Positions 12,901-64,000 of a DNA stretch of 64,000 bases are shown here, piece by piece. The stretch comes from Oculina patagonica (taxonomy: Eukaryota): positions 4,526,001 to 4,590,000 of the forward strand of contig NC_135768.1 in NCBI RefSeq assembly GCF_052425735.1, read 5' to 3'. Position numbers and translations under genes: made by a program. Numbering within the stretch: position 1 is the first letter of the stretch; every line of letters begins with the position of its first letter. Below the pieces are notes generated by a model. That model made no database searches. It was given only the letters and a program-made list of their open reading frames with translations, and had not been told where the DNA came from.

Positions 12901-15900
12901 GTTTTCATTTTACAGAGAGAATTTGATCGCTACACCCAAAATATGAGAAAAAATTGATAGGTCACCAGACTCGTTTACGAGAAAGCGACAATTTACTTCT
13001 CTCGCGGACTAAGCCACATAGAAAAAAGCCGCCATTTTGTTTAAGCGCGCGCTTATTGCGCGTAAAATTCTGCGCAGTAAAGATGCGCAATGCAATACAG
13101 GGCAATGGCCTTAAATAACAAAAGTTATAATTTCTTCATATTCTGAAAACTGGGTGGGAGGCATGGTGGCCTAATGGTTAGTGAGCTGGACTCATTGTTG
13201 AGTAGTCCAGGTTCAAGCCCTGGCCAGGGTCATTGTGATGTGTTTTGGGACAAGAAACGTTACTCTCACAGTGCCTCTCTCCACCCAGGTGTATAAATGG
13301 GTAGCAGTGAATTTAATGCTAGGGGAAACACTGCGATAGACTAGCATCCCATCCAGGAAGGAGTAGAAATCCTCCTAGTCACTTCATGCTACGGAAACTG
13401 GGCGACGTTTTGGCCTGATGGGCCACTGAGCTCAAATGCAAACTTAACCCATGTTAACTGGAGCTAAGGGTCAGTTTGGTAATGCCATCTAGGTTTGTGG
13501 ACAGACTGGGGGGGTTAAATAGGAAAAATATGATAATTTGTCACTTTCAGGATGCAGCTGCTGGATCCGAATCTGTGCAAGAAGATGGCGCAAAACCAAC
13601 AGACACAGCAAAACAAAAGGCTGCACCAGGAAAAGAGAGACAAAAGTCAATTAAGGCTGATAGAAAGTCTATAAAGAGAAATGGCACAACTGGTTAGTGT
13701 TTTAAGTACTACCTCAAACTTATTAATGATTCATCTCATTAAAACAAAGGACATCAGAGCCGTGACGGTGGTTTGGATATGTGATCTTAATTATCATAGA
13801 CTTTGATGATTAAAGTTCTCTGTAGTTTTAGTTTCAGTTAAGAATATATATAAAATACTTGAGAGTGTGTTTCATCAAACTTCCAAACACCTTGAAGTTC
13901 ATCAAAAATACTCCGCTTAACATCATCTCTTCAACTACCTTATTGTTACTTATTTTCGCGGGACTTAATCTTCGCGATTTTCGCGATCTTCAAAAAATCG
14001 CGAAATTAAAGACCCGCGAAAATTTATTTCAAACGTTTTCTATTGTATTTTTTATGCTAATTAGGGATTTTTGGCCAAATCGCGAAAATTAAGTGCCGCG
14101 AAATATGCCCGTTCCATTTTCGCGAAAATAAGTAACAATAAGGTATCTTCTTGGTGTTTGGAAAAGTGATGCGTCAAACTTCCGTGTAGAAAAGGAGTTG
14201 AAGAGAGAGAAAGGAATTGGCCAATTGACATTATTAACAGTGATGTTTCCTGTACTGCTACCACTCAATACATTTTTCATTGACATCATTCGCAGCATCT
14301 CTAATAATTATCAGCAAACTACATTGTGCGTCACCAGGGTCATAGGCAGGGGGTGCAATGGGTGCATCCACACCCACCCACAGGCCACAAAGGTCCGCTT
14401 AATCGAGGAGTGAGGGTTAAAATGACTCTCAAAATGCAGGAAATGTGGATTTCATTCATTTCCCGTGGGAGAATACCGCAGACCCCCCTAGACTGTCAGA
14501 CCTCAGGCGCTTGCACCCACCCATTCAAAATCCTGCCTACATCCCTGATCACTATTGATATAAAACACCACATTGAGATTAAAAGAACATGAATGGAAAA
14601 ACATTCTGTTTGGATAATTTTGGTGATTTATTTACAGATTCACTCACAGCTGACCTCCCTCCTATGAATCTGAATCAGAGACGTGGCTCAGAATTGATTC
14701 TAAGAGAAGCCTTAAGACGAGAGAGTTCCCGTGATGAAAATATTGCAGGGATAAGACCGCTTCAGCTGCAGAAGGGTGGCAGTCAGCATCCAGCTGTGAC
14801 TAGCCGTTCCCTCTCGCTTCAAGCAGCTCCTTCTCCTGTTACCGTGGAAAAAGGAGGACCTTTTGCCAAGAGATCTAGAAGCACCAAGAAGCGAGAAGGC
14901 AAGACGCAGTCTCTTATCTGTTTTAATAACCCAGAAGGTAAGTACCTGAAGGATCTCATGTGGGATTGGCCAGTTTTTGGGGCCTTTATGGACATGTCTG
15001 TATTCACTACGCCAAAAAGGAACCTTTACACCTTGCCAATTTTTGCTTGTTGAAATTTTCCATCTCATTTTGTTTACCAGCCAATGTATTTTTAAGGTTT
15101 TGAAAATGTTTTCAATGGCAAATTTGTTTGGTCCTCTTTAATTGGTTTTATTGATTTGGTTGTTTCATTTTAACACAAATTTCTGTGCAAACAAGCATTG
15201 ATTTATAATTTTCGGCAAATATTTTGGCTAAATGAAGTTGCAAAATAATGGTTATTTAATTTGATATCATCCCCAAATTTGGTATTAACTAATTAATGAG
15301 CAAACTGTGTGGCAATCCAGACATATCAGTTAATAAGCATATTCATCCAACAGTATACCACTGACGTGAAGTTGTCATAGAGGGGTAACTTCAATTTATT
15401 GACTAATCTGTATCAGAGTAAAAATACAATTCATTAGTATGGCACTGGTATATTTGTTATAACATACTCACTTGTGAAATGTACATGCAGCTAAAATGTG
15501 ATAAAAAACATTTGTGTGTCATAATGTCGCCGTTAATTTGTTTTAAAACATCAATATTGTTGGAGCTTAAGGGCTTAAGGAGTGAATGAAAGCCAAAGGT
15601 AAGATTATAGCTAAGTGCAAAAAAGATCAATTTAGTGAGGCATTAGTACAAGAACATTTGTGTGCATGTATATACTTGTACATCATGCTGAATTTGGGGA
15701 TGATATAAAATATATTGAATTACTAATTCTAATAATATCTAAATCAGTTTCGGAGTAAGATAATATGTATGTCATTTAATGTGTTATTGATGACAAAAAC
15801 TTGACATTAAAAAGAAATGAAAAATCAACATTTTCCTTGCAGTTAATGTTACATAAAACTTGAACACTTGTTGATTGGGAATTAGAAAATGAATAAAACT

Positions 15901-31300: not shown

Positions 31301-34149
31301 GTGCCACCTTCTATCGACGTTCTCTGTTGTTAAAAATTGCGTTTGTAGAGGAATAAACTCTACTAAACAAGTTGTAGCTGTGATCGCTGGATTGCTTTCG
31401 TAATAGTAACAACACCATTAAACTGAAATTTTATTTTGAAACAGAAAAGAAAATTAATTTACTGTAATTAAATTTAAGCTATAATTTACAACAAAGTTGG
31501 TAGCCAGACATCCGAAATAACTACAAAGTACTATTTTTGTATGGTAACCATTAAATATTAGATTTTTGGTCTTAACTGTTCTAAAATAAGTGGAAGGCAA
31601 CTTTACCCACGAAAAACATTGTATTTATTGGGGATAGAAATGAAACTTTGGCTATGAATATCGATTTTTTTTTTTAAAGGCGCGCGGAAACAACTTGATA
31701 ACATTGGCTAACGTTTTCAAATTGCAACCATCCGAGCCATCTCCAACCTTGTTCCCAGGGCTGGAAAAGCCCTGGGAACGAGGTCGAGCCATCTGCAGCC
31801 AAACGCACTCTTAGCGCTCTTTTTTAGTTGCAGTTGTTTTCGTTGCTCTCTTTGATGGGGTAGCCAAAACCTTATATGTTTATTGTAAAGAGTTGTAGTA
31901 TAATTCCATTTATTGAGTTATCTTTACTATATTCTTTTGCAGGTTGCAGAACACATTTGATGCTCCATATCAGAAATAACCAAACAAGAGAGTCATTCAA
32001 GTTAAAGACAAGTTTAAATAAGAGGTAGAAAACAATCTTGACGAGATTTCATTTTAAAATTACTCAGCAAGAATCGCATTTAAGATTATTTTCTGTTGAA
32101 AATTATTTGATGAGTTTCGACTATCAGTTGGAATCAAAAAACAAGCTTAACCTATATTATGTCAAATTTTTCGTTACATTTGTATACTAGTTAACATCGG
32201 TTTGAAAATTTTAAATTTTCCCGCCAAAAGACTTAGAAAAAATACGGGCGCTTAAAATACGCATGCGCCATTTTTAAAAAAAATCCAGCCTTCGTCTACT
32301 CCGTTTAAAAATTTCTAATTTTCCCGCCAAAAAACTTAGAAAATACGGCGCCTAAAATACGCACGCACCAATTGTTTTTGTTTTTAAATATTTGGATGTT
32401 TTTGTAATCATTATTAATATTGTCAATAAAGTGAATTGTTTGACTGTCTGGTCTTATTATTATATTGTAAGTAATTTAAGTCAATAAAGTAAACAAATAT
32501 TCTTTGTGGTCTTTATTATCTTCACATGTAAAGTGTTTCAACCAACACGTGTTTCAAATAAAAATAAGTTCTATTCACCTTAATATATTTTATTATAACT
32601 TAATTAGTTAATTGAAGCTCAATTCAATTAATAAAAAGGGTGTGAAGGAAAATTCTGCCCTATATATACTAAGTCTTTTGGCGGGAAAATTTGAAGAAAT
32701 TTGCACAGCGTTTCCCCTGGCAAGATTTTCGACAACAAATTCAACATGGGTTCCCTTTAAAATTTCCCGCCAAAAGTATGTAAACAACACCTCGTGCAAA
32801 AACTTGAAAAGGTCAACGCCCAGTTTTTCTTGACATGTGTAAAGACGAGAAATTAAAACTGTTTTCAGCTAATTTTATGTTTAAATCAAATTTCCAATCG
32901 AATGTATCCCTCGACGAAACAGTATTCGAGTTGTTCCACCTTGGACGGTTTGCACGAGATGTTGTATACATGCTGTAAAAATAGGCAATATGGCAAGTTT
33001 AAAGTTATAGTTTCGTCAATTTCTAAATTTTTGAATATTGGTTTGTGAAAATTGTTTGCTAAGCTTACAGTTATAACTTTCTCGTTCTGCGATTTTTCAG
33101 TTATTGCTTTTTAAATTTCCGATCGATCTTTAACTTAAGAAACAAAAAAACTTGCCATGTTGCCTCTGATAAAAGATCTTTCCAGCTGATGATCAGTTTT
33201 TTCGTTTGTATAACAGGACAAGTTGAACGAAACAACTGCGAGAAATCCTTCTAAAACTTGAATAAAACGTGGCATAAGCAATTTATCACCAGTTGATTTT
33301 AAAATCTCGTTATTTCTTATCCTTCTAGCTGTTTGGCTTTAATTCTAAAATCTTTGATCAATTCATTTCCAATAATTCAAAATGAATTCAACGTACATGT
33401 AATTAAGTTGTGTTCTCCAGTTCCTACTAATGCTTTGTCCTGTGTTACTTCAAGTGACGGCAGAAGAAAGATCTTTTATCACTTAAATTGTAACAACTAC
33501 ATATTTTCTCAGTAATAAAACCCAATGTCTGGTCCAAGGAAAAAGAACGTTTCTCCCAAATCTGTTCCTCCCTTAAACGGGAAAGCCCGCATAAAAGTGG
33601 TTTACGGCTTTTGAGGCTAAATCTTCGCGAATTATTTTGTACAAATCCACTGTGAAGACGTAGTTAGTAAGCTGCGATAGAGATAATCTTTAACTATAAA
33701 CTTTGAGCGAGTTTGAATTTCGCGTGGTTTGTGTTAGCGCTCGTTTTGATAGTATTGTGTCAAATTCTAGTAGTTTTCTTTGGCACACCGAACTATTCCA
33801 AGAAACCTTTGATAAAAGTGTCATTCAATTGGGTTCGAATGAATGAATTTTTAGCTATTTTCTAGTTAGCTGTTGATTGACAAAAGAGACCTGATTTTTC
33901 CTTGAAAAAAAAAAAGCTTTCATAAAGCACCTTACTGTTTTACAAGTGTGCTTGTAATCAATTGACAAACGCAGAATTGTACAAGATAAATATAGGTTAA
34001 ACAGAGAGCAATAAGTATTACAAAATCACGATAAAACTCTTGGCTAGTTTTGAATTCCCTTTCGTAAAATATTCAGCCAGAAAAAAAAAAACAGTGAAAA
34101 AGATAATTTGTCGTTCCTTGTAACAATGCTAATCTTCACATGCTAATCA

Positions 34150-35960
34150 AAATGATTCAATAACAATATTTTTCAATTTTCTCTACGTCGACTTTTTGAT
34201 ATATATCACAAGAAATTCATACTTCTTTAAAAAAATTACTCAATAATCTAAATGATTCAATCTGAACTTTCTTCCATTTTAACCACTTCGACTCTTGATA
34301 TACCTGATCGAAGAATCGTTGATCTCGGAAAAGCATAAACCATGAACGACGCGACCCAAATGTTTCTGGGAATCAAAAGAAAGAAAAATCGTCGTCTGTG
34401 ACAGAATATACATGATAATAAGACAGGTTGCATAAATCGTGCTCTTAAGACTCTCAACGAAAGAAAATATCTTGATTATCAATAAAAGGAATATTACTTA
34501 GCTTACCAAGGCTGTCTACCCAGAATACTATTGGGTCATATCGTTCATGATTTATTCTTTTCACATGGTCAACGTTTCTTCAATTAGGTGTATACAGCAC
34601 AAGAAACGTATGTTTCTTTTCTTGATAATCAAAATCATTTAATTAGAATTTTTTAAATTTTCTCCACTTTGACTCTTTGACACAAATGTATGCTACTTTA
34701 AAAAAAGAAACTTGATAATCTAAATGATTCAATCAGAATTCTTTTTAATTTTCTCGACTTCGACTCTTGATGTAAGCCCAGGGGGGGTACTCGAAGTATA
34801 CATGACGGGGGGTCCGACGTATTTTTTTGGGTTGAAAATTTACACGCTGGGTATTTTTTTGGGTCAAGGGATCTGTCACGTATTTTTTTTTAGGTCTTAG
34901 AAAAATACACGTATATTTTTAGGTCTTATCTCCGAGCGAACTTTTTCGTTTCGGGTTTTCGTTGCGATCAGTGGATCATTCGAACTTTTTTCAGTGACGT
35001 GTGTTCCAGAAAAACTGTTAATATTAAGAAGACAATACAATGTATTTAAGTCTTGTATTTTTTTGGGTTGGAAATTTTGATGCCAAGTATTTTTTTGGGT
35101 CTAAATTTTCAAGCTTATGTATTTTTTTGGGTTTGTAATATGAAGCTCCGTCGGACCCCCCCTCCCCGTCATGTTTACTTGTCTACCCCCCCTGGGGATG
35201 TAAGGCACATGAAAATTCATGCTACTTTAAAAAAGTAACTTGATAATCGAAATAATTCAGTAAGATTTTTTTCAATTTTCTCCACTTCGACTCTTGATTT
35301 ATGGCACAAGAAATTCATGCTACTTCAAAAAAATAACTTGCTTATCGAAATGATTTAATAAGAATTTTTCCAATTCTCTCCACTTTGACCTTTGGAATAT
35401 AACACAAGAAGTTCATGCTACTTTTAAGCTTATCTCGATAATCGAATTGATTCAATCTGAATTTTTTCAATTTTCAGGACTTCGACTATTGATGTAAGGC
35501 ACAATATAATTCATGCTACTTTGAAAAAGTGATTTGATAATCTAAATGATTCATATAGCACAAGAAATTCATGTTACTTTGACAAAGCGATTTGTTAATC
35601 TAAATTATTCAATAAGAGTTTTTAAAGTTTTCTCCAGTTCGACTCTTGATATTTGGCACAAGAAATTCATGGTTCTCTGAAAAATAACTTGATAATTCAA
35701 TTAGAATGTTTTTCAAATTTCTCTGCTTTGACCTTGATATATAGCACAAGAAATTCACGGTACTTTAAAAAGGTAACTTGATAATCGAAATGATTCAATA
35801 AGAATTTTTTCAATTTTCTCCTCTTTCACTATTGGAATATAGCACAAGAAGTTCATGCTACTTTTTAAAACAACTTGGTAATCGAAATGATTCAATCAGA
35901 CTTGTTTTAAATTTTTTCCACTTCGACTCCAGATATAGGTACCAAGAAATGTCTGCTAAA
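34150..35960. repeat. ~98-bp AT-rich satellite array (gcacaagaaattcatgctact...ttgataatc.aaatgattcaat)
   Basis: Unit starts at ~35304, 35402, 35499, 35656, 35744, 35842. Confidence 0.85.
34777..35196. mobile_element. CCC...GGG-terminated MITE with 8-bp TSD inside the satellite
   Basis: TSD GATGTAAG (34769-34776, 35197-35204); inverted arms. Confidence 0.85.
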
Positions 35961-48101: not shown

Positions 48102-49349
48102 ATGGTTTTTAAATCAAAACAGCCTCTGAAATTTTCCAAGTTTCTGAAGTCAAAATGGCTGACAGACGTTAAGGATCACGAGTTGAAGAAACGAACAATA
48201 GTGGTCAACATCTCCAACACGGATGCCATGATTTCTGGCCCGGAGCCTCGCAAAGTTTTGCCACCGCGAAAGTCGACCATTTTGCAAGGTAAGAACACGG
48301 CCGTTTTACACTAGTTATGGCCAACACTCCATACAAACGGCATTTTAATTCATTTATTCAATAAAGGCACTGTACAGGCAATATGAGTTTCAAGTACATG
48401 TTTTCGTGCACGAAAATTGAGGCTTGATATTTAATAGCATTTTTCTGCCAAAGACGCTCCGCTGAAGGAAAGCAAGAGGAGAAGCGCTTTGTGTCCTTTG
48501 TGAATTGATTAAGATAAATTTAATGCTTTAATGCACTTGTAAAGTACATTTTAAAAATTTATTGGAACAATGGAACACTAATTCTGTTTCGCACGTTTAC
48601 ATTGTTATAAGCGAGTCTCGTTTGACCTCTGGCTAAACACCGTCCATTGCACGTTTTGCTCAATTTGCAGGCGTATAGGAGTAACAAACGGCGTTTTCTG
48701 TTTTCCACGATTTAAATCTTTAACAAACTAATATTTCCAATGTTAAGTATCTAATAAACAAAATTTTCAAGATGAAAAATTTCCACCTTTTTAAAAATTA
48801 TTTTTATGCCACGTCGTAGGTGTAAGCATCATTAGCGCCCAGTCCCTTGTGCTGATCAACGTCCCGACGGAAACCAACATCGGTGGCATGGTACTAGAAG
48901 ATGGCTGGTGTCAGCTGACAGAACAGGACCCGACTTACCCGAGGGATGTCCCGTTGTACAAATCCCCGCAGTTTGATGTTGGCTCGGTTGAATTTGACCC
49001 TTACATAGTGAGCGGATCAGAAAAGCTGAGCTCGGGGGGCGCTGCTAAGAAGTACAACATCAAGGTGAACGTGTGGTTTTGTCCGGCAAAAACCAACTGT
49101 GGAATCCATAACCACCACACTGATCCAGAAATGCTTGAGGTCCATACGCAGATTTATGGCACGGGAAGAATGCAAAAGTTTCGCGAGAACGACTTCAAGA
49201 GCATCTATGAAGATGTGATGATGAGTCCTGGCTTCACCCATGATCCCTTCGCTGGCGTCAAGGAAAATGGCGACATCTTCTATGGCTGGCATCAGTACTA
49301 CTCTGATACCGATTGCATCTGGATGGCAATCGAACACCACCCGGCTTAA
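48102..49349 (+). CDS. Two-exon cupin-fold metalloprotein, copy A (exons 48102-48288, 48820-49349; 238 aa); AUDH-cupin-like
   Basis: CAAG|gtaaga ... cgtag|GTGTA joins in frame. Motif CGIHNHH..EVHTQIYGTG..THDPF..YGWHQY..DCIWMAIEH. Exon lengths (187/530 nt) are identical in the paralogue. Confidence 0.88.
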
Positions 49350-51328
49350 CTCGGTAAAAAATCGGAAAAGTTCGGAGAAAACTCTGCCGATCTTAAACAG
49401 CAAATATGGACGTAGCTGGGGAACAAAAATTCGTGATTATTTACTGAACATTGCTACACCAGAACTTTAGTTTAGTTTGTTCACAGTTCTTTGAACATGG
49501 ACAGTAGAATATTTTTCAGTTGGTTAATTAAACAACAGAACTCTTATATGTACTCTTGTCATTACAAAGATTATTAACAGAAATTATTTGAAGTTAAGTT
49601 AGAGTACTGGCTGCCAGGAATAACCATACAGGCTAGTGGAGGCAGGCAGCCAGTTGGCATTAGCATTAAATGGAAATAAATTACAGGTCGGCAAGATAGC
49701 ACAATAAGATAGCATTAATAGTTAAAAATAGTATAGAAACCAGAAGAATGGAAATTAACAAAATTTCATGTATTTCAAAATTCTGTCAAGTGTTATATCA
49801 ATTGTGTGGGTTAAGCTACGAAATATCTTGTATCTCATATACCTGGAATGAAATAAAAATTTACCCTTTTTGTTCGAAATATTGTAACTGGCGCTGTCTG
49901 AGGACATTATGATAGGAAAATTTAGGTACCAAAATAATGAAAAGACCACTCGTACAAACGGCAGCGAAGTGAAGCCGTATCTTGGCGTAGATCAGGATCA
50001 GCAATACAGAGTAAAACGATAAACCAAATGCAAGGCTGATCGGACAGCTAAAAACGCTAAATAAATTATTGGGCAATAAAATTTATTTAGCCTTTTTAGC
50101 TGTCCGATCAGCCTTGCATTTAGGAAGAATCAGGCCTTCTTCTTTGACTAATCACGCAGTCTTTGTTGGAGGGCAAAGAATGTGTGACGTGCAAAAAGGC
50201 CCCCTACGCGCAAGGCGAATGAGAAACGCGCGTCACGCGTAACAAAATGTGCTGCATGTTTTGTACTGCCTTACAAACCGATCAGGTGGTACAAAATCCG
50301 CTATGGCGTTCTCGGCTCGTTAATGCCTGGACTCTATGCTTTTCAGTGAGGTCACTGACTTCGCACGAAATCGCGCGTGAACGACCGCTTGAACAACGAG
50401 ATCCCAGTTCGAGGCTTTGCGCAGTTAACGAAACAAGAGAGAACGACTAGGTTCTAGGCTGGGACTTAAAGGTCCCAAAAACAAAAAGTCTTCAACTGCT
50501 TCAACTTGACAAGCTTCATGAAGAAAGCTCATTGTTATGTAGAGATCTTGTTTAGACATTGTTAGGGTGGGGTGGGGTGGGAACGCTTTACGGTTCTGAG
50601 TATACAAAAAGAGAAAAAACTGCCTGTGTAAACCGATCCTACTCCGAACACCAAAGTTAAGTCAAATGAAAATTGCTTTGCTCATTTCCCCATCCTGAGA
50701 GGGGGTGGGGTTGGGGTAGGGGGGGGGGGATGGACTCCTATACAAGGGAAGCGATCATAACGACTGACTCGAGGAGGATCCGCCTAGTTTAGGAGTAGGG
50801 GGTATTCAAATCATCGCCTATCTGGTAAACCCCATGAACAAAACTTAACCGTCTGAAAGTTTGAGACGATACATTAAGATCTTGCTTGTATAAAACTTTC
50901 ATTGCTCTGAAAACAATAAAGAGGATTTTGAATTTAAAATTTGTTTCTCAGTCTTCTCTCCTTGTAAAGAAGGGGCTATGCAAGCAAGATGCAATGTTGA
51001 GCACAGTGTCGAAAACGACCATCATCTTTCTGTGATAAAATGGGCCCTGTCCTACTTCTGTTCCGAACACAATAGCTGTGACCACTTCTCTTAACAAGAG
51101 TGATCGTTCGAAATCAGTTGAAAACGACCCCGGATAGGTATCAGAATGTCTATTGAACAACTGAAATGGTTTTAGTAATTCATTCATATGCGGTTCATAT
51201 GTCTTTTTTTATAATAATCAACTCGGGAACAGTTTCTCAGCCGCATTTATATTTATTCTGTTCAACTCGAAGCTTACAAGACACAAGCCATTATTGTTTA
51301 TTACATCTATCGAGTGGTATTAGTATTC

Positions 51329-51834: not shown

Positions 51835-54800
51835 TTAAGCCGGGTGGTGTTCGATTGCCATCCAGATGCAATCGGTATCAGAGTAGTACTGATGCCAGCC
51901 ATAGAAGATGTCGCCATTTTCCTTGACACCAGCAAAGGGATCATGGGTAAAGCCAGGACTCATCATAACATCTTCATAGATGCTCTTGAAGTGGTTCTCG
52001 CGAAACTTTTGCATTCTTCCCGTGCCATAAATCTGCGTATGGACCTCAAGCATTTCTGGATCAGTGTGGTGGTTATGGATACCACAGTTGGTTTTCGCCG
52101 GACAAAACCACACGTTCACTTTGATGTTGTACTTCTTAACAGCGCCCCCCGAGCCTGGCTTTTTTGATCCGCTCACTATGTAAGGGTCAAATTCAACCGA
52201 GCCAACATCAAACTGTGGGGATTTGTACAACGGGGCATCCCTCGGGTAAGTCGGGTCCTGTTCTGTCAGCTGACACCAGCCATCTTCTAGCACCATTCCA
52301 CCGATGTTGGTTTCCATCGGGACGTTGATCAGTACAAGGGACTCGGCGCTAGTGATGCTTACACCTAAGGAAACAAAGTACGCCATTTTGTCAGTTTGGT
52401 GTACTTTACCCTGCATGCACCGCGTAATACTTACAAGAGAAAATTCATCAATTTTATTTTACAAGTCAATGTATCAAGTGAACTAAAACATAATCAAGGA
52501 ACACTGTTACCAATAGTGATCTTGACCTGTTCGCTTACAGGCAGAATTTTAAAGCTGTTACCAAAAGGACAATTGTCATAAACGAGTTGATGGACCCCCC
52601 ACGGTTTACGTTTTAAGAAGGCAAATCAAAGATATTTTGCATTAAGTTGATAGCCCTGCACTGCTTGATTTGCAAGATTGCATAATTTTTGTTGTGTGAC
52701 GTCGTAAGACGTCATTAATTCCGTCATCTTGGATTTTACTTTTTTCAGGAAGTCAAAAAATGACACAAATTGATACAAGATGAAGTCAAGATACTAATTG
52801 AATATAAAACTGTACCAATTCTCCATTTTTTCTTAAGAGAACAAAAAAAATTAAGAACTATTATTATTCGAAATTTGGCTAAACCTGCATATCAAAATGT
52901 GGTTGCCATGGCAATGTAACACACAGCTGACACATCAAAATGCTGGCAAGGGATAAAAGAACAGTTACTGAGAGTTTAAGAATCAAAGAGTAAATTCCCT
53001 TTTCAAAATTTTGAAAAAATCTTGGGGGGGGGGGGGTGGCATCTAATTATCCGATCTACATTTTTGTACCGAAAAATGTTCCGTAACGATATTGCTGTAA
53101 CTTTGTTTTTTTGTTATATCTTGTTGGCGTTGCTTAGGACAAAAATCGCATATCTTAAGTTTGTCTCAGTAAGTGTAAGATATTTGCTATGCATTTTATT
53201 GTACGACTAATCGAATTTAATCACTTAAGACAGCCAATCAGAATACTCTATTGCCGGTCTTATATTTTTTAAGTGTCGGACCGGAAAGAGCTATTGTGTA
53301 ACTTTCAAGAGATCAAACAAGATTAAACCGCAAGGTCGTTAGAGGTTTGTCACGAAACCATGCTGGCCTTTTGCTGGCCTTTACTTTCTTTATCGTCGAG
53401 ATTCGCTCCAGGCAGACGTGCACTTGTAACTCGACAAAACGTCAGAGGTCGACTTGAGGCAAGTCAGAGTCAAGTAAATACAATAAAAACCCGCAAACCT
53501 AGTTTTTTTCCAGGTTAGCCTAAACAGATTTTTACATAAAGGGTAGTTAACACAAATTTAGGCTGTTTAGGTTCTTAATAGGTTCTTATTTTCGAGGAAA
53601 AATTTACATTGTTGCTAATAGAACTTTAAGTGACATTCAGCCTATTATTTGTATAAAATTTGCATACAACACAAGTGTTTATGTAAAAATGAAGCACTAA
53701 TCATTCAGAACACGACATTGTATACATATACAATAAAGCGTTGTCCAAACGTATTTTCCCAAAAGTGAACATTTATCATTTTTGGTCATACATTTAACTG
53801 CGACAATTTGTACTTCAAAACGTCAAAGTCACTTCAAAACACGGCCTATTACATAAAATGGCCTCGAGCGGATTTCCCAGCGCATTTCAATGTATGCCTT
53901 AATTTTTTCAATGCTTGGAGTATTGCTTCAAAAACATGAACTCTTCTAGCACTGCAATTAAACAACTTTTCAAAGCTTTTTCACAAGGGCAATAATTGGC
54001 CAATTAAGTTTCAAGTTTGTCGCTTGTAACCGTCTTAATGTTCCCTCGTTTAAACCATCCTTAATTATTTTCGGTTCATTATTAGTTCTTTGGTGTTTTT
54101 TCTACCGTAGAAACTCTCTCCTCCGCAGAGGCCTCTTTCGTGGGGGAAGGCGAAAAAACACGGGGGGAGGAAGGCGAAAAACACGAAAAATGAAAAATAG
54201 GGGGAGCGCGGGGACCGACGGGAAGGGCGAAGGAGCGGAGGCCTGAGATCTCGCTCCTTTCCTTTCCCCTTCCCAGTGTGCCCCGCGCGCTTTCGTTTCG
54301 ATTCTCTCCAGGCTCCGCGCGCTTACTTTTCACCTCTCCCCGTTCCTCTCCCTACTATTTCCCAGCCCGAAACACGAAAGAGACCTCTGCGGAGGAGAGA
54401 GCCGTAGAAATCAATTTTTTAGGTTCTGTTCAATTTGAAAGTGATTTTGTACATCAGAAAAATAACTTACAATATCGTCACAGACCTCCTTTAAAAACTT
54501 ATATAACATAAGATAATATTTATTTATACTATTTTTATAGTTAAAATACATATACAAAAATGCAATAACGTTGTCATTGAGAAAAGAATCAAAGGCCCTT
54601 CGAGCAACCTCATGGTAATTCGGTGAAGTGCCGTCCTTCACTTTTTTTTCAAATAAGCGTTCAATAATGTAACGGTCTCACTTTATTTACCTTTAAATAC
54701 TTATTTTTTATGTGTGAGTGGCATCAATGGGACACTGATGCTTTGTGCTCTCCGGCTCCGTAGCGCAGATTCTATTTTTTTCACCACCAAAATAAAGTGT

Positions 54801-56798
54801 AACCTTTGAATATGTTTTTTACAGTCTTGGATGCGCTGAAGTGCGTTTTCAATTACTTTTCTGTCAGTACATATATTGTATACGTACCGGGCAGCGACAA
54901 GCGTTATTTTTGAGCAGCCGATGAAATTTGAGAGAAAGATGCACCTGAGCACGTCGTGTTTCTGCTCGCCTCAAAAAGATGAAAAACGGATGACGTGACA
55001 CGAGATGACGTTACGCGAAACAGAAACGTGCTATGGAACTCGTGTTTTTCCAGTGAGCTGAAACGTTTATTAAATCATGTCACATGCGAAACTGGATGTA
55101 TTTTGTACCTGCTTTCAGTATTAAAGTCACAATCTCACTTTATTTCCATTTTTGGATGTTTTCTTTTCATCACGGGAGTTGCGTGAATGGGTCATTGATT
55201 GTTTGTGCGCTCAGGCTTCGTAGAGCGATTTTTTTTACCACTGAAAACGGATGACGTGACGCAAAACAAAAACGTGCCGCGATAGCTGAAACGTTTATTA
55301 AATCACGTCACCTGGCAAGCGAATTTGCATGTATCTCATACCTGCCATCAGTAAGTCACAATCTCACTTCATTTGCCTCTTTGAATGTTTTTTTCTTTCT
55401 CATGGGAGTTGCGAGAATGGGTCATTGATGGCTTGTGCTCTCAGGCTTCGTAGAGCGAATTTTTTCACTACTAGAATAAAGTGTAATAACCCTTGATCCC
55501 CTTTCGCATTTAGAAAAATTTCTTTTGTAAATATTGATCAACCTCGTTTCCGAAGAGAGCGATCTTGGGAATGAGGTTGGAGAATAATTTGTTTTTGATT
55601 GACATGTGCTTGATGTGTTTAAAGGACCTTTCTGTCAGCACGTTTACCGCTTAACGCATAAATTAATTGCGGTTTGATATCAGAATGGAGTGAGTGAGTG
55701 AAATTAAAGTCTCAAAAGTCATTTTAATACCTTCATTACCATTCGGTAAAAATGAAGACAGGCAAATAAGAATAAATTAAGCGCACGTTTAAAATTCACC
55801 CGAAAAAATGGCCTTAAAACATCTCAAATGCACATAAATCAATTTATCTTATTACCTGATTAATAAGTGTACAGGATTAACTTGTGAGTTTCCTGTAAAT
55901 GCTACCAGTTATGATGATTAATTTACCTTTTTTCATGTTTCTCTTTGATGCAAAAGTTATTGCAATTAGGTGCAACTTGATTTTTTAGTTTAAATTTGGT
56001 GGGGTTGAGGTGACATACACCGAGCTAGTGTTTTTTTTATTTTAGTTTTCTGAAGCTGACTGGCTTTCGAGCAAAATGAAATACCTCACGGAAAGAAGTG
56101 AAAACAGTTTTTTCATTCCCTTCTTCGCGGTTTGGGAATAATCAAGAAATGAAAATTTAAAATTGATATTTATTCATTTATATCAGCGCGCCTTGCGTTA
56201 TATTGAACACAGCTTTGTAAGGATGGCGACTAGGGAAAACTACACTCTTTTTTATAACAACCTTTTTTTATAAGAACGTCGAGGCCGAAACAAGGCGAAA
56301 ATTTAAGGACATCCTAAAAACGTACCCAAGGCTCAAAGACATGTACTAAATGAATCAATTTTTATTCAAATCCAAACTTTAACCAACATAGTCATCAACC
56401 ATTGCGAACATGAACATGCACATATCGGTTAGGAATGAATTTACTGCAATACCACTTTGTTTTTAAACGTTAATAAATAAAAACATTAAAAACCTTTTTG
56501 GGCTCAAATCCTCGAAATAATTAAGAACGTTGAGTCTCGGCAAAAAAATTAGACGTTCTTATGTACAGCAAAAAGAGTGTACAGTGTTATATTAATTATC
56601 TGCGGTATTACCTTCAAGTATAGTTGATTTTCTTGGGTACAAAACTTTGCGAGGCTCCGGGCCAGAAATAATGGCATCGGTGTTGGAGATATTGACAACT
56701 ATTGTCGGTTTCTTCAACTCGTGGTCTTTCACGTCTGTCAGCCATTTTGACTTCAGAAACTTGGAAAATTTCAGGGGTTGTTTTGATTTAAAAACCAT
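51835..56798 (-). CDS. Two-exon cupin-fold metalloprotein, copy B (exons 56798-56612, 52364-51835; 238 aa); AUDH-cupin-like
   Basis: GAAG|gtaata ... ccttag|GTGTA; same intron position and phase as copy A; 13 of 238 aa differ from A; in-frame stop upstream of the ATG. Confidence 0.88.
54114..54401. mobile_element. Palindromic MITE with 9-bp TSD in the intron of cupin copy B
   Basis: TIR ctctctcctccgcagagg; TSD CCGTAGAAA. Confidence 0.88.
56241..56581. mobile_element. TA-flanked MITE next to the exon-1B donor; contains the duplication breakpoint
   Basis: TIR tacactcttttt / aaaaagagtgta; only its last ~20 bp recur at 59661. Confidence 0.7.
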
Positions 56799-59700
56799 AT
56801 TTCTCGACGCGTTCAGTGCAACTTGTCGAAGTGTAAAGATGACGTGGAAGGCTGTGGAGGCTTCTAAGATTAAAGCGTTTTCGTGGCTTGATGCACGATT
56901 CCGGATGCAAATATGTCAGTGTTGCTCAAGAAAAGGCGTGTCTTTGATGGACACGTAGGTAGGTAGGGTGGACAGTGTCACGGACAATGTAGGGCTTGGG
57001 GGAGGGAGGCAGAATTTGCCCATGTCGCCGACATTTATCAGCGAGTAAGAAAGAGTAGCAGTTGAAAAACGTCTTCCTAAGTTAATAAGAGAACGATTGC
57101 ATTTAGACGTTCAAGCCAAAGATTTATTTACATTTCTTCTTCGTTCCGTTAACTGATAAGAATTTTAATTAACGTCAAAGGTTTGTTCTTAACGGATGAT
57201 AGTTAATGAAGAAAACTTAAGTTATCAAAGCTAGTCCATGTTTTCCACTGGCATTCGGGATAAGCACACAGGTGAAGTTTAAGAAATTTTGTGTTTCGTT
57301 TCTTAATATCAAGCCAGACAAGGTATAGCGAAGAATTAATCGTATAGATTTTGTGTGAAAAATGTATCTGCTATGCTGCATGGTTGTTAAAAACATCACC
57401 CTCCCCCCGGCTAATCTTCGTGTTATATTGAACCCAATGTCCTTATTTGGCAAATTTGACTGACAGCAGCGTTGACCCCTTTTTGAAATTTATATTTGAA
57501 GAGCAGAATACAGTCTAGGCTCACTGGTGAACGCCTGGTGAGGTTTTATAAGCTCGCTCGTGAATCTCCTGCAATAAACATTTCATTCGATTGAATTTCA
57601 TTTTGAAAATAACTTTACTTATCAGCGTGCAAGGCGCACTATAAACCCACTGAATACAAGCTTTGTAGCTTTTTTCATCATCTTGTTTATTGTTTAGAGG
57701 TGTAATGTTGAAGCACTACATTATATGTTCGTGTGCGCTCGGTTTTTACTGCTGCACTCCGGCAAATCTTGCTCGTCACCAACCATTTTTCCATTCTTTG
57801 GTTATTTCAAAATGGTTTCTTTTGTAAGTTCAGAACGCTTTCTTCTATTAGAAAGATGCCTGCAAACTTCACGTACGATTACTTTTTCCGCCCTATCGCT
57901 TTCCAATTAATATATTGGTATCCACGTAATGGTCTTTAAGGTGGCTCCGCAATTGTTCCAGACGAGTGCTCTCGCCCCGCCGGGATGAGGCTTAAAATCA
58001 AGGCGGGTTTCGGGATATGAAAAATTTTAGTGGCGGCCGCGGGATACGGGATGAAATTGTTTTGGCGGGACCGGGATGTGTAACTTTTTGTAGGCAAGAT
58101 GTGGGATGTTCTGAAATTTATGGCGAGATGAAGTATCAAACACGATCTTTGTTGATAGATAAACTTTGTTCCCGCGACTATTGTGTTTTTACCAAAATTA
58201 ATAGTTTTAATTTCTCGGCCACTTATAAACAACGTGACTAACTTAGGTATACAGGGCAGGAGTTTCCCAGGCACTTTAATATGGTAGTTAAAACGGTTTT
58301 AATTTTTCTACCGATTAAAAACAACGTGACTCTAAACTAAGTACACAGAGCAGGAGTTTCTCGTGCATTTTGAAAGAGCCGATAAAACTAGTTTAATTTG
58401 TTGACAGATAATGTCAACAAATGTCACTAACTTAGTAACTCTACTGAACTAAGTACACAGAGCAGGAGTTTTCCGTGCATTTCTAGTCGACAGATTCAAA
58501 AGCGATGTGACTAACTTCAGTACACATGTCAAGTACATGTGGCCAAACTAAGTACACAAGAGCAGGAATTTCTCGGGCATCAACAAATTTGATATTTTCA
58601 TTTTTGAAATAAACCGTTCTCCCTAAACAAACCCTTAATGTTTCGAGGGTTGTGTAATAACATACAACAGATACCTCGGTGTGCTGGCATTCATCTTCTG
58701 CGGTTTTTCAAAGGTGGGTTTGCATCTCGCTCGGCTAGAATGACATCTGAGCTAATTTGTCTTATATGCTTATACTTTGCTATCAGAATGTAATATGTTA
58801 GTTGATTGCCATTGTGTTTATCCATTTTTTTAACTTGGAAGCTTTTGCCTGTTAAATCTGCTGGAAAAAAACCCTGCATCAGGGATACTTTAGAGAGATC
58901 GCTATATTTACGAAACATTTTAATGGCCAATTCTTGTTGATGGTGCAGGGGAGTTGTGACTACATAAGTTCGCCGTCGAACATTTAAGAAACCGAGAGAT
59001 TCGCCGAAGTTGTCATAATTCGCTCCTTTGCTGTCGCCATAGTCGCTATTTCAACACAAGTCTTGTCGTTCGTCAGTTTTATTTCTTCTATGTCGCTGTA
59101 AAAATGCTGCGTCGCTTCTCGGAATTTATCCAAGCAGGGCCTCTGAAAAGAGTCTATAACCAGCTTGCATTTCAAGGTCTTTTAAAGTTGTTCAACAATT
59201 TTAACTCTTTTAAAGCCTCAAACAAACTGTTTTCACTGCGCATGCAGCCGGTATTTTTTCCAGGTAGAGATAAATCAACCGTTCCCCGACTAGTGTAACA
59301 AGAACAGCAGAATCCCACCCTAGAAGGAAAAGCTACCGAGTGCGACTCGGGCAGTGAAACTTGTGAGCTCGAGAGTGAAGGTTTTGTAGAAGAGGACAGT
59401 GGTTTGGGCATCAGTAAGCTACTTAAGCTGTCGACTTTCTAGTCGGGATAACAGGCTGTTTCAGGTTGTTTTCGAAACGACTACAAATGGCTAATAAGTG
59501 GCTCCTCCAAAAATGTTCTGCAATTGGTATAGGATTTAATGGAGCCGAAACCGATTGTGAAATTGCACGCATTTTAGGCATCCTACTGATGAACGGTTAC
59601 GGCAATTAGATATTTTCAGGAGCGCTATTGCGTTAACGTTAATTTTCTGTCCTTTGAGAATTATGTACAACAAAAAGAGTGAACAGTGCTATATTAATTA

Positions 59701-62700
59701 TCTGCGGTATTACCTTCAAGTATAGTTGATTTTCTTGGGTGCAAAACTTTGCGAGGCTCCGGGCCAGAAATAATGGCATCCGTGTTGGAGATATTAACCA
59801 CTATTGTCGCTTTCTTCAACTCATGATCTTTTACGTCAGTCAACCATTTTGACTTGAGAAATTTGGAAAATTTCAGAGGCTGTTTTGATTTAAAAACCAT
59901 TTTTCTTGGCGCGTTCAGTGCAACTTGTCGAAGTTTTAAGCTGACGTGGAAAGCTGTGGGGGCCTCTAAGATTAAAGCGTTTTCGTGGCTTGATGCACGA
60001 TTCCGGATGCAAATTTGTCAGTGTTGCTTAAGAAAAGGCGTGTCTTTGATGGACACGAAGGTAGGTAGGGTGGACAGTGTCACGGACAATGTACAACTTG
60101 GGGGAGGGAGGCAGAATTTGCCCATGTCGCCGACATTTATCAGCGAGTAAGAAAGAGTAGCAGTTGAAAAACTTCTTCCTAGTTAATAAGAGAACGATTG
60201 CAAGTAGACGTTCAAGCCAAAGATTTTTTTACATTTCTTTTTCGTTTCGATAACAGATAAGAATTTTAATTAACGTCAAAGGTTTGTCCTAAACGGATGA
60301 TAGTTAATGAAGAAAAATTAAGTTATCAAAGCTAGTCCATGTTATCTACTGGCATTCGGGATAGGTACACAGCTGGTGTTTAAGAAATTTTGTGTTTCGT
60401 ATCTTAATATCAAGCCAGACAAGGTATAGCGAAGAATTAATCGTATAGATTTTGTGTGAAAAATGTATCTGCTATATGCTGCATGGTTGTTAAAAACATC
60501 ACCCTCCCCCCGGCTAATCTTCGTGTTATATTGAACCCAATGTCCTTATTTGACAAATTTGACTGACAGCGGCGTTGACCCCTTTTTAAAATTTATATTT
60601 GAAGAGCAGAATACAGTCTAGGCTCACTGGTGAACGCCCTGCTCTCGCTGTACTTGCTGAAAGCTGTGTTCTGTACAAAGCAAGACGGTACGTAGGGTAT
60701 GTGTTCTATCGAATATAATGCCTTATTTTTACTGTATAGAAATTAAGGTAAACGGTTAATCGAAATTCCCTTCTTTTAGCACATGCTAATTTTAATCATA
60801 TTTTACCAAAGACACGAAAGATTTCATCGTCTAGCTAGAAGTTGAAATCTTATTCAAAAAGCAAAGGTTTTATTTTTATTTTTGGATAGTATGGGTTACG
60901 TTTTTATAAAAAATTGCTTTCTTCCGTTTGGGTTCTTATGTGCATGTTTCCTAAGTGAAGAAGATCGCTTGTGTGTTAGTTCGGCTATTCATTTCATACA
61001 TCATGTTAATTCAGCTACATTTATCAGTTTCAAATTGAGACCAATACTTTTTTCTTTTTCGGTTTAGAAGCTATAGAATACTTTCCACTTCTCGCCCTGC
61101 GTGGACTGTAGTTTTGTTTTTTTCACAGTATACTCGGACAATTCTCAATTGAGTCCCCGAAAAAATTATTGCATTCACATACAACGTTACGCCGGCTTAA
61201 CGCATAGCTCGAATAATTAATCGAAAATTTAGCTGGTTATATAGTGAACACTCCGTGCCATCATCAATATCTTAGTTATATTCGAGGTGTTTTCAAACCA
61301 ATGTAGCTATTTTCACACATGCAAATATTCTAGTAGTGTAACTGATCTCTGCTTTGTATATTACAAACGAGGTTTTATAAGCTCGCTCGTGAATCTCCTG
61401 CAATAAACATTTCATTCGATTGAATTTCATTTTGAAAATAACTTTACTTATCAGCGTGCAAGGCGCACTATAAACCCACTGAATACAAGCTTTGTAGCTT
61501 TTTTCATCACCTTGTTTATTGTTTAGAGGTGTAATGTTGAAGCACTACATTATATGTTCGTGTGCGCTCGGTTTTTACTGCTGCACTCCGGCAAATCTTG
61601 CTCGTCACCAACCATTTTTCCATTCTTTGGTTATTTCAAAATGGTTTCTTTTGTAAGTTCAGAACGCTTTCTTCTATTAGAAAGATGCCTGCAAACTTCA
61701 CGTACGATTACTTTTTCCGCCCTATGGCTTTCCAATTAATATATTGGTATCCACGTAATGGTCTTTAAGGTGGCTCCGCAATTGTTCCAGACGAGTGCTC
61801 TCGCCCCGCCGGGATGAGGCTTAAAATCAAGGCGGGTTTCGGGATATGAAAAATTTTAGTGGCGGCCGCGGGATACGGGATGAAATTGTTTTGGCGGGAC
61901 CGGGATGTGTAACTTTTTGTAGGCAAGATGTGGGATGTTCTAAAATTTATGGCGAGATGAAGTATCAAACACGATCTTTGTTGATAGATAAACTTTGTTC
62001 CGGCGACTATTGTGTTTTTACCAAAATTAATAGTTTTAATTTCTCGGCCACTTATAAACAACGTGACTAACTTAGGTATACAGGGCAGGAGTTTCCCAGG
62101 CACTTTAATATGGTAGTTAAAACGGTTTTAATTTTTCTACCGATTAAAAACAACGTGACTCTAAACTAAGTACACAGAGCAGGAGTTTCTCGTGCATTTT
62201 GAAAGAGCCGATAAAACTAGTTTAATTTGTTGACAGATAATGTCAACAAATGTCACTAACTTAGTAACTCTACTGAACTAAGTACACAGAGCAGGAGTTT
62301 TCCGTGCATTTCTAGTCGACAGATTCAAAAGCGATGTGACTAACTTCAGTACACATGTCAAGTACATGTGGCCAAACTAAGTACACAAGAGCAGGAATTT
62401 CTCGGGCATCAACAAATTTGATATTTTCATTTTTGAAATAAACCGTTCTCCCTAAACAAACCCTTAATGTTTCGAGGGTTGTGTAATAACATACAACAGA
62501 TACCTCGGTGTGCTGGCATTCATCTTCTGCGGTTTTTCAAAGGTGGGTTTGCATCTCGCTCGGCTAGAATGACATCTGAGCTGATTTGTCTTATATGCTT
62601 ATACTTTGCTATCAGAATGTAATATGTTAGTTGATTGCCATTGTGTTTATCCATTTTTTTAACTTGGAAGCTTTTGCCTGTTAAATCTGCTGGAAAAAAA

Positions 62701-64000
62701 CCCTGCATCAGGGATACTTTAGAGAGATCGCTATATTTACGAAACATTTTAATGGCCAATTCTTGTTGATGGTGCAGGGGAGTTGTGACTACATAAGTTC
62801 GCCGTCGAACATTTAAGAAACCGAGAGATTCGCCGAAGTTGTCATAATTCGCTCCTTTGCTGTCGCCATAGTCGCTATTTCAACACAAGTCTTGTCGTTC
62901 GTCAGTTTTATTTCTTCTATGTCGCTGTAAAAATGCTGCGTCGCTTCTCGGAATTTATCCAAGCAGGGCCTCTGAAAAGAGTCTATAACCAGCTTGCATT
63001 TCAAGGTCTTTTAAAGTTGTTCAACAATTTTAACTCTTTTAAAGCCTCAAACAAACTGTTTTCACTGCGCATGCAGCCGGTATTTTTTCCAGGTAGAGAT
63101 AAATCAACCGTTCCCCGACTAGTGTAACAAGAACAGCAGAATCCCACCCTAGAAGGAAAAGCTACCGAGTGCGACTCGGGCAGTAAAACTTGTGAGCTCG
63201 AGAGTGAAGGTTTTGTAGAAGAGGACAGTGGTTTGGGCATCAGTAAGCTACTTAAGCTGTCGACTTTCTAGTCGGGATAACATCTCTATTTAGCTGTTAT
63301 GTACGATTTAACAGTCGATTTGTTTTACAAAACCTATGCCTAAAGTACTAAGGTGAAAAAGTATCAAAATCGCATTCGTGACATAAGTGGCGTTCACAGC
63401 CGTAGCTCAGTAACACGATTTCCATGTTATGAAGCAACTTGGAGCCCTTCACACAGTTGGTCTAGCCTAAGCTTAGGAAAGTAATTTAGATTTCAATTGC
63501 TACTAAGCTAATCAATTAACGTAAACTTCCCTTTTGCGTATAACGGACGGAGGAAACTTATACTTATGGGTTTCATGGGAAAAAGTCGATGAATTGAGAC
63601 GTTATAGCAGGCGGGATTGGGATGAGAGGAGGGCATTGGGGGTTGCTGAACACCGTATTACCGCAAAAAATCGGCAAATATCGCAATACCCAAAAAAAAT
63701 CTGGAAAATACTGCAATTTCATAGTAAGCCTGTATGGTTGGTTGGCGGATTCGTTGACGCGAGGGGAAAAGAGGCAAAAACGAGCGGTGGGACCGTGAAA
63801 CAAAGACACGGCTTTAAACCGGCTGTTAAAACATTAAACTTGTAAATTAGAAAGTGTGAAAAAATTAGGCTGTTTCAGGTTGCTTTCGAAACGACTACAA
63901 ATGGCTAATAAGTGGCTCCTCCAAAAATGTTCTGCAATTGGTATAGGATTTAATGGAGCCGAAACCGATTGTGAAATTGCACGCATTTTAGGCATCCTAC
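56558..64000. repeat. Tandem segmental duplication of cupin exon 1 + upstream DNA (unit 1 ~56558-59660, unit 2 ~59661 to beyond window end)
   Basis: 56580-57535 matches 59682-60638; 57540-59453 matches 61369-63282; 59454-59586 matches 63868-64000. Confidence 0.95.
59714..59900 (-). CDS. Additional exon 1 of the cupin gene (orphan or alternative first exon, copy C)
   Basis: Intact ATG, 187-nt frame and |gtaata donor; no exon 2 between it and exon 1B. Confidence 0.75.

Follow-up and report, generated by a model that had tools for sequence, protein, structure and literature searches.

Is an orphan first exon, copied without the rest of its gene, put to use, or is it debris of a duplication that has not yet had time to decay? 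The question arises at a locus of the stony coral Oculina patagonica, in a stretch of 64,000 nucleotides (assembly GCF_052425735.1, contig NC_135768.1, positions 4,526,001 to 4,590,000 of the forward strand), referred to here as the window. It carries gene B, a two-exon, bacterial-type cupin-like gene belonging to a small gene family with two coding exons per gene, and its convergent paralogue, gene A. Upstream of the first exon of gene B (exon 1B), the minus strand holds a further copy, exon 1C, and another, exon 1D, follows just past the end of the window. On balance, and with some reserve, we lean towards the reading that 1C and 1D are working alternative first exons that would provide extra promoters for gene B. 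The observations behind this reading are the bias of their substitutions towards silent sites, their structure and the number of copies, their descent from 1B, and a parallel array in a related coral.

Divergence and signature of selection in exon 1C

The initial annotation had counted 14 substitutions between the 187 nt of exons 1B and 1C, 12 of them synonymous and two non-synonymous (P31A and Y54H). This count was exact, with no insertion or deletion between the two exons. By the Nei-Gojobori method, the pair showed 0.014 non-synonymous substitutions per site (dN) and 0.37 synonymous ones (dS), a ratio (omega) of 0.038 (binomial p = 8e-7), and none of 5000 neutral simulations gave 12 synonymous changes. 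The differences had therefore passed a protein-coding filter, as the annotation had proposed. Both replacements are within variable loops. A pseudo-exon is expected to lose its start, frame or splice donor and to approach a dN/dS of 1; in 1C all three features were intact and omega was 0.04. The donor, GAAG/GTAATA, is identical in 1B, 1C and 1D. With no difference between 1C and 1D, and 1B set apart from them at only 2 of 62 residues, the copies do not encode distinct protein variants.

The same annotation had set the exon against a nearly identical non-coding block shared by the units (block Y, Table 1). The counts stood, since units B and C have 6 mismatches in the 1914 nt of this block and no gaps (99.69% identity), but the comparison did not: the block lies elsewhere in the unit, and a dispersed transposon makes up 1473 of its 1914 nt. 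Measured against its own flanks, the exon gave a different picture. Divergence between B and C was 5.7% in the 53 nt of adjoining intron, 14% in the 64 nt of 5' untranslated region (5'UTR) directly above the ATG and 4.2% in the next 672 nt upstream. With 7.5% divergence overall, the exon is no more conserved than these flanks, and it is at the non-synonymous sites alone (1.4%) that it surpasses them.

The differences between 1B and 1C were polarised with the copies of two related corals, L031 (GCA_044670265.1) and L032 (ERZ25067872). The lineage of 1C and 1D acquired six derived changes, all synonymous (nt 39, 45, 58, 63, 69 and 78 of the coding sequence), and the 1B lineage acquired five, four of them synonymous and the fifth Y54. 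Three to four derived changes were shared by B and C, one or two fell on the L031 lineage, and three sites, the P31A codon among them, were ambiguous. Neutral expectation is about one synonymous to three non-synonymous changes, under which the probability of finding 5/5 or 6/7 synonymous is 0.0002-0.003. Since the 1C/1D branch carries six synonymous changes and no non-synonymous change, the signature is found on the orphan exon's own branch and is not merely contributed by 1B.

The silent sites of the exon were 3-6 times more diverged than the neighbouring non-coding DNA: 11 of 62 third positions differed, against 28 of 672 upstream sites (p = 1.7e-4), and the comparison with the unique part of block Y (Y1) gave p = 0.045. 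Compared by lineage, the exon accumulated 8.5-9.5 changes in this species vs 1.5 in L031, and the 5' flank 5-6 vs 9. The 5' flank shows no excess in this lineage, so the silent excess is specific to the exon; the flank counts also reject a generally faster clock in this species. Two other sources of the excess were rejected. CpG decay does not account for it, with only one or two of the 14 sites in CpG context, and neither does conversion from exon 1A, as no derived state on either lineage matches 1A and the A-specific sites are interspersed.

Origin and mosaic structure of the array

The intron of gene B (~4.2 kb between 1B and exon 2B) contains a miniature inverted-repeat transposable element (MITE) that is absent from the orthologous site in both L031, where the intron is collinear with that of gene B, and L032. 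Units C and D contain 32 nt of the 1B intron followed by the first 21 nt of the terminal repeat of this MITE, and then break off. Because they end inside an element of the 1B intron that the relatives lack, the copies must have been made from gene B after the insertion. On this structure, the cassettes are lineage-specific duplicates of 1B, produced after the split from the nearest sampled relative. In the exon tree 1B and 1C were sisters (support 98/98, and 84/81 once a closer relative was added), and flank divergence between B and C (4-9%) was lower than that between B and L031 (~16%, from an 88% alignment). In Desmophyllum pertusum and in the more distant coral L019, nothing lies between the orthologous exon 1 and the adjacent GH31 gene. 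The event was a partial duplication, with a breakpoint 53 nt into intron 1 and exon 2 left uncopied. The annotation had held that 1C evolved as functional coding sequence for a long time; given the MITE end of units C and D, the cassette is instead a young, lineage-specific copy of 1B. A complete paralogue carrying the 1C haplotype, which the annotation had suggested looking for, was not found in the 529-Mb genome, to which all genome-wide copy counts refer: there are exactly four copies of exon 1 and two of exon 2.

The full unit C (59453-63866, 4414 bp) opens with a junction piece Z (208 bp) and block X, whose 978 bp comprise 53 nt of intron, exon 1 and 737 nt upstream. These are followed by a 730-bp segment, by Y1 (441 bp), by a ~1.8-kb transposon and by a 241-bp repeat. 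Unit B is without the 730-bp segment and the last 584 bp, and unit D ends after Y1. The block Y transposon has many copies elsewhere in the genome, at 80-91% identity. Units C and D diverged by 0.4% over 59453-60814 and then by 5.6% and 9.4%, so that C is D-like up to position 60814; B and C diverged by 4-14% in X and by 0.3-0.45% in Y, and B and D by 9.2% in Y1. Homology within the array is a patchwork of recent (0.3-0.5%) and older (4-9%) tracts, the mosaic described in the annotation. Unit C appears to be a hybrid, D-like on its left and B-like on its right; a likely route to it is unequal crossover near 60815 and, after that, two deletions in B. No flanking repeats able to mediate the duplication by homologous recombination were found at the edges of the array. 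The 137-bp element of piece Z recurs at 63912-64000, at the start of unit D, and has very many copies (90-97% identity) on all chromosomes; it is a young high-copy family of MITE-like or SINE-like (short interspersed nuclear element) type.

Table 1. Features of the array and of the two genes, in window positions; the last row gives positions in the locus of a related coral.
Feature	Positions	Strand	Remarks
Exon 1A (paralogue A)	48102-48288	+	Convergent paralogue; outgroup for exon comparisons
Exon 2A (paralogue A)	48820-49349	+
Exon 2B	51835-52364	-	Sole downstream acceptor exon of the minus strand; one of 2 genomic exon 2 copies
MITE, 337 bp	56243-56579		TA target-site duplication; in the gene B intron, 32 nt past the 1B donor
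Exon 1B	56612-56798	-	Proximal first exon of gene B
Unit B 5'UTR and promoter region (block X)	56799-57535	-
Unit B block Y	57540-59453		Unique Y1 57540-57980 and dispersed transposon 57981-59453, truncated
Junction piece Z	59453-59660		Between unit B transposon and unit C; 137-bp high-copy repeat 59498-59634
Unit C intron start	59661-59713	-	32 nt native intron, then 21 nt from the end of the MITE inverted repeat (59661-59681), where homology to unit B ceases
Exon 1C, coding part	59714-59900	-	ATG at 59900; 62 codons and 1 nt; donor GT 59713-59712
Unit C 5'UTR and promoter region (block X)	59901-60638	-	95.8% to unit B past the first 64 nt; 99.6% to unit D
730-bp segment	60639-61368		In C and D only, absent in B; no C/D difference up to 60814, 5.6% beyond
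Unit C block Y	61369-63282		99.69% to unit B; transposon continues to ~63625, then 241-bp dispersed repeat to 63866
Unit D start (piece Z)	63867-64000
Exon 1D	64128-64314		Would-be position, just past the window; identical to 1C
Exon 1 copies of L032	4654-4847, 7555-7737, 10001-10183		Positions in the L032 locus

Proposed use of exons 1C and 1D, and its alternatives

Three unit C motifs upstream of the ATG were conserved across three corals: TTAATCTTAGA at -75, the octamer ATTTGCAT at -114 and GTGACAC at -183. These cross-species motifs are intact in units B, C and D, each of which keeps at least 0.74 kb of upstream sequence. A permissive tblastn search of the interval from exon 2B to the GH31 gene (52.5-71.3 kb) for traces of exon 2 returned noise only. 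With two copies of exon 2 in the genome and no remnant near the array, exon 2B is the only possible partner of 1C and 1D. We therefore put forward, on sequence evidence, the following course of events. The promoter-plus-first-exon cassettes 1C and 1D would have arisen within this lineage, when the 5' end of gene B was duplicated in tandem, and they kept ~0.7-1.9 kb of upstream sequence, the conserved motifs, the start codon, the 62-codon frame and the donor. A transcript begun at 1C or 1D would skip 1B and be spliced to exon 2B across an intron of 7.3 kb or 11.8 kb, respectively, and its product would be the same 238-residue protein with the two loop substitutions. Purifying selection at the protein level, acting on the cassettes since they were copied, would then reflect their use as alternative first exons; their transcription and splicing we infer.

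A perfect octamer ATTTGCAT, a candidate promoter element, was found at position -114 relative to the ATG (56905-56912, 60007-60014 and in unit D). It is kept in all array units of this species, in L031 and in both intact units of L032.

The locus of L032 carries an array of its own, in the order GH31, three tandem copies of exon 1, one exon 2 (13745-14269) and a convergent A-like gene. Its breakpoint is ~55 nt into the native intron and not in a MITE. The two intact L032 units have diverged by 19% upstream, 13% in the intron and 5.5% in the exon (six synonymous and three non-synonymous changes, omega 0.14); the best conserved of the three is the middle one, which is non-proximal and has a branch of zero length in the tree. 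The distal copy (r32_1) has decayed: its ATG has become TTG, so that the start is lost, and it carries an 8-bp insertion, an illustration of how a disused copy looks. The L032 locus shows the classical picture of two exons maintained and one abandoned, which makes the use of non-proximal first exons plausible. A shared ancestral origin of the two arrays was rejected, since their breakpoints differ (a lineage-specific MITE here, native intron in L032).

Several observations weigh against the use of 1C and 1D as alternative first exons. All 12 silent differences between 1B and 1C fall within nt 21-120 of the coding sequence (p = 0.003), and the six silent changes of the 1C lineage span 40 nt (p = 0.0008). 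Such clustering looks like templated conversion from a functional donor, in which case the filter would have acted on that donor and not on 1C. The duplication is fairly young (flanks 4-9%). At the rate of its flanks, a neutral 1C lineage should have gained only ~3-7 non-synonymous changes; 0-1 were seen, a deficit of only moderate significance on that scale. The protein collection searched held no transcript-derived protein of this species or of that of L032, and no entry closer than 91%. Finally, the products of 1B and of 1C/1D are almost alike, so any benefit would be one of dosage or regulation only.

The first alternative builds on these points, and we regard it as a serious though less probable account. 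Exons 1C and 1D would be unused by-products of recent duplication and unequal crossover, too young to have decayed, and their silent differences would have been imported by one or a few short conversion tracts from a functional exon 1 outside this assembly, either another allele or a lost unit of the array. Besides the 40-nt span of the 1C changes, it draws on the tract of high divergence around the start codon, which covers ~185 nt (-64 to +120) and has ~12% divergence within flanks of 3-4%. Sequence exchange is evident at this locus, with 99.7% identity of B and C in block Y, 99.6% identity of C and D over Z and X, and concerted evolution of exons 2A and 2B. The duplication from C to D is very recent, and the youth of the flanks limits the power of any argument from the lack of decay. 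If conversion did import the silent changes, their bias says little about 1C in its present place. On the other hand, no donor was found: neither the four genomic copies of exon 1 nor the relatives fetched carry the 1C states at nt 39, 45 and 58. The changes derived in B and in C are interleaved, which would require at least two tracts and two unseen donors, and in L032 an unused copy decayed while two others stayed intact. The annotation had also suggested that 1C might have been captured from another functional paralogue or allele. For the unit as a whole this fails, as it was copied from 1B, and the part of the proposal that may survive is a short tract converted from some functional copy not sampled here. 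The clustering of the silent changes hints at such conversions from unsampled functional copies or alleles, or else at a mutation hotspot near the transcription start site (TSS), filtered by selection on the protein.

It is improbable that the three units stand for one cassette only, assembled as separate haplotypes or mis-joined repeats, with 1C allelic to 1B. Parts of the units are near-identical (99.6-99.7%) and their junctions are built of transposons, as might be expected of an assembly artefact, but the region has no gaps and its mosaic identity (C and D differing by 0.4% and then by 5.6-9.4%, B and C by 4-14% and then by 0.3%) is unlike that of stacked alleles. The left flank of unit C is the unit B transposon and not the intron of B, synonymous divergence (29%) is far beyond allelic levels, and the same kind of array is present in the independent assembly of another coral. 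Hardly credible at all is the view that 1C is all that is left of an ancient third paralogue, once complete, which lost its exon 2 by deletion: D. pertusum does have three to four gene copies here, an orphan exon 2 included, and an exon dS of 0.37 looks old, but the MITE end that marks C and D as recent copies of gene B, the sister position of 1B and 1C, the low flank divergence, the lack of any exon 2 remnant up to the GH31 gene and the empty interval in D. pertusum and L019 led us to reject both such a relic and a unit captured from one.

Returning to 1C and 1D as alternative first exons, the arrangement can be compared with known systems. The vertebrate UGT1A and clustered protocadherin genes are clusters of variable first exons with shared constant exons. 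Similarly to these, the coral locus has tandem cassettes, each with its own promoter region and a first exon that has a donor and no acceptor, all facing a single exon that they share downstream on their strand; with cap-proximal splicing the inner first exons would be passed over, and the array evolves by unequal crossover and gene conversion. Unlike these, it has three cassettes only, which encode nearly the same 62 residues (two differences, with C equal to D), and it is young and lineage-specific; any gain from the distal exons, if they are used, would lie in extra or differently regulated promoters and not in protein diversity. The locus also resembles partial tandem duplications that leave orphan exons, with a unit boundary inside intron 1, the rest of the gene unduplicated and transposon-filled junctions. 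Orphan exons usually decay, whereas the two copies here keep frame, start, donor and motifs at an omega of 0.04, and L032 retains two intact copies despite 19% flank divergence. In agreement with concerted evolution by non-allelic gene conversion, tracts of 99.6-99.7% identity stand beside others with 4-14% divergence, unit C is left-D and right-B, and exons 2A and 2B are closer within than between species; the departure from this pattern is that homogenisation has gone least far in the coding exon.

D. pertusum (L028, MU826832.1) offers a mirror case. A 6.2-kb tandem duplication with 97% identity (3378-8076 vs 9555-14192) has its breakpoint in the intron of the minus-strand gene, which left an orphan exon 2 at 7791-7267; the locus holds three copies of exon 1 and four of exon 2 beside the GH31 gene.

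If 1C and 1D are used, the locus records a young and datable birth of an alternative-first-exon architecture, in which duplication with an intronic breakpoint was followed by unequal crossover and the new exons already came under selection. The case is strengthened by another coral, in which such an array was born independently at this locus. As the gene apparently came from bacteria and stands beside GH31, promoter multiplication may have tuned an acquired pathway. A broader proposal, to which we give little credence, is that the 5' end was amplified independently into working cassettes in at least two coral lineages and that a local burst of substitutions (-64 to +120) was kept silent by selection on the protein. 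The amplified arrays would then be a sign that more transcription of a horizontally acquired enzyme gene, or transcription at other times, was favoured by selection, and the burst would mark a TSS-proximal hotspot of mutation or repair made visible by copies standing side by side. The local silent excess is a small and clean puzzle in itself, whether mutation or conversion caused it. If the exons are unused, they call for caution: the low dN/dS of a young orphan exon may come from a donor and not from present function.

The encoded protein and its genomic setting

The product of gene B (~238 residues) has full-length homologues in cyanobacteria and other bacteria at 55-60% identity, and its best named matches were proteins of D. 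pertusum, Actinia and Nematostella; anthozoans apparently took the gene from bacteria. Its match to the Pfam family AUDH_Cupin (PF18637) was below the gathering threshold (14.6 and 13.8 bits vs a cut-off of 25). The structure model had a mean predicted local distance difference test (pLDDT) score of 73.6, and Foldseek matches to cupins and bicupins were weak (best E 5.6e-4); small cupins matched with a probability of 1.0 over 85-90 residues but were weak overall. Residues H155, E165, H167, H216 and H232 were invariant across 40 homologues. Exon 1 encodes conserved, confidently modelled beta-strands, and since these are present in the bacterial proteins too, it belongs to the enzyme proper rather than serving as a leader. 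We found no paper on this gene family or on such arrays in corals.

The exon 2 copies of genes A and B were compared over 48817-49375 vs 52367-51810 in the window and over 13741-14372 vs 18943-18312 in L032. In both corals, dS between the two was 0.11-0.12 within species and 0.25-0.31 between species. The homology is limited almost exactly to the exon, and exons 1A and 1B are distant (dS 0.57). Such a pattern suggests that the inverted exon 2 copies have converted each other repeatedly. Exon 2 also varies in another coral (L020, 10022-10600; L030, 10022-10708), where an 18-residue segment that reads …GTVE(L/F)DPYAVTGSEKPSL… and lies in the poorly modelled loop of the protein is repeated in tandem, with one or three additional copies. 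In L019, the single exon 1 (7726-7913) has an extra base that shifts the frame (…CCTAACATATAGTCGTC…), which is either an assembly error or the mark of an inactivated gene.

The GH31 gene (Gal_mutarotas_2 / Glyco_hydro_31) starts ~5 kb past unit D, beyond the window (positions numbered 71380-72850, plus strand), and is transcribed away from gene B; the same arrangement is found in D. pertusum and in L032. Part of it (73212-73965) recurs in inverted orientation with 96% identity at 93763-93008, ~20 kb further, and may belong to a second copy of GH31. Nine long open reading frames (ORFs) elsewhere in the window gave no Pfam match. In L032, the intron of the B-type gene contains, at 11582-12186, ORFs with DUF3504 and a weak phage-integrase match, probably a Crypton-like or DIRS-like element. 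In a self-comparison of the window, dense, diverged tandem repeats with units of ~100 bp and 68-81% identity were found at 34100-35960.

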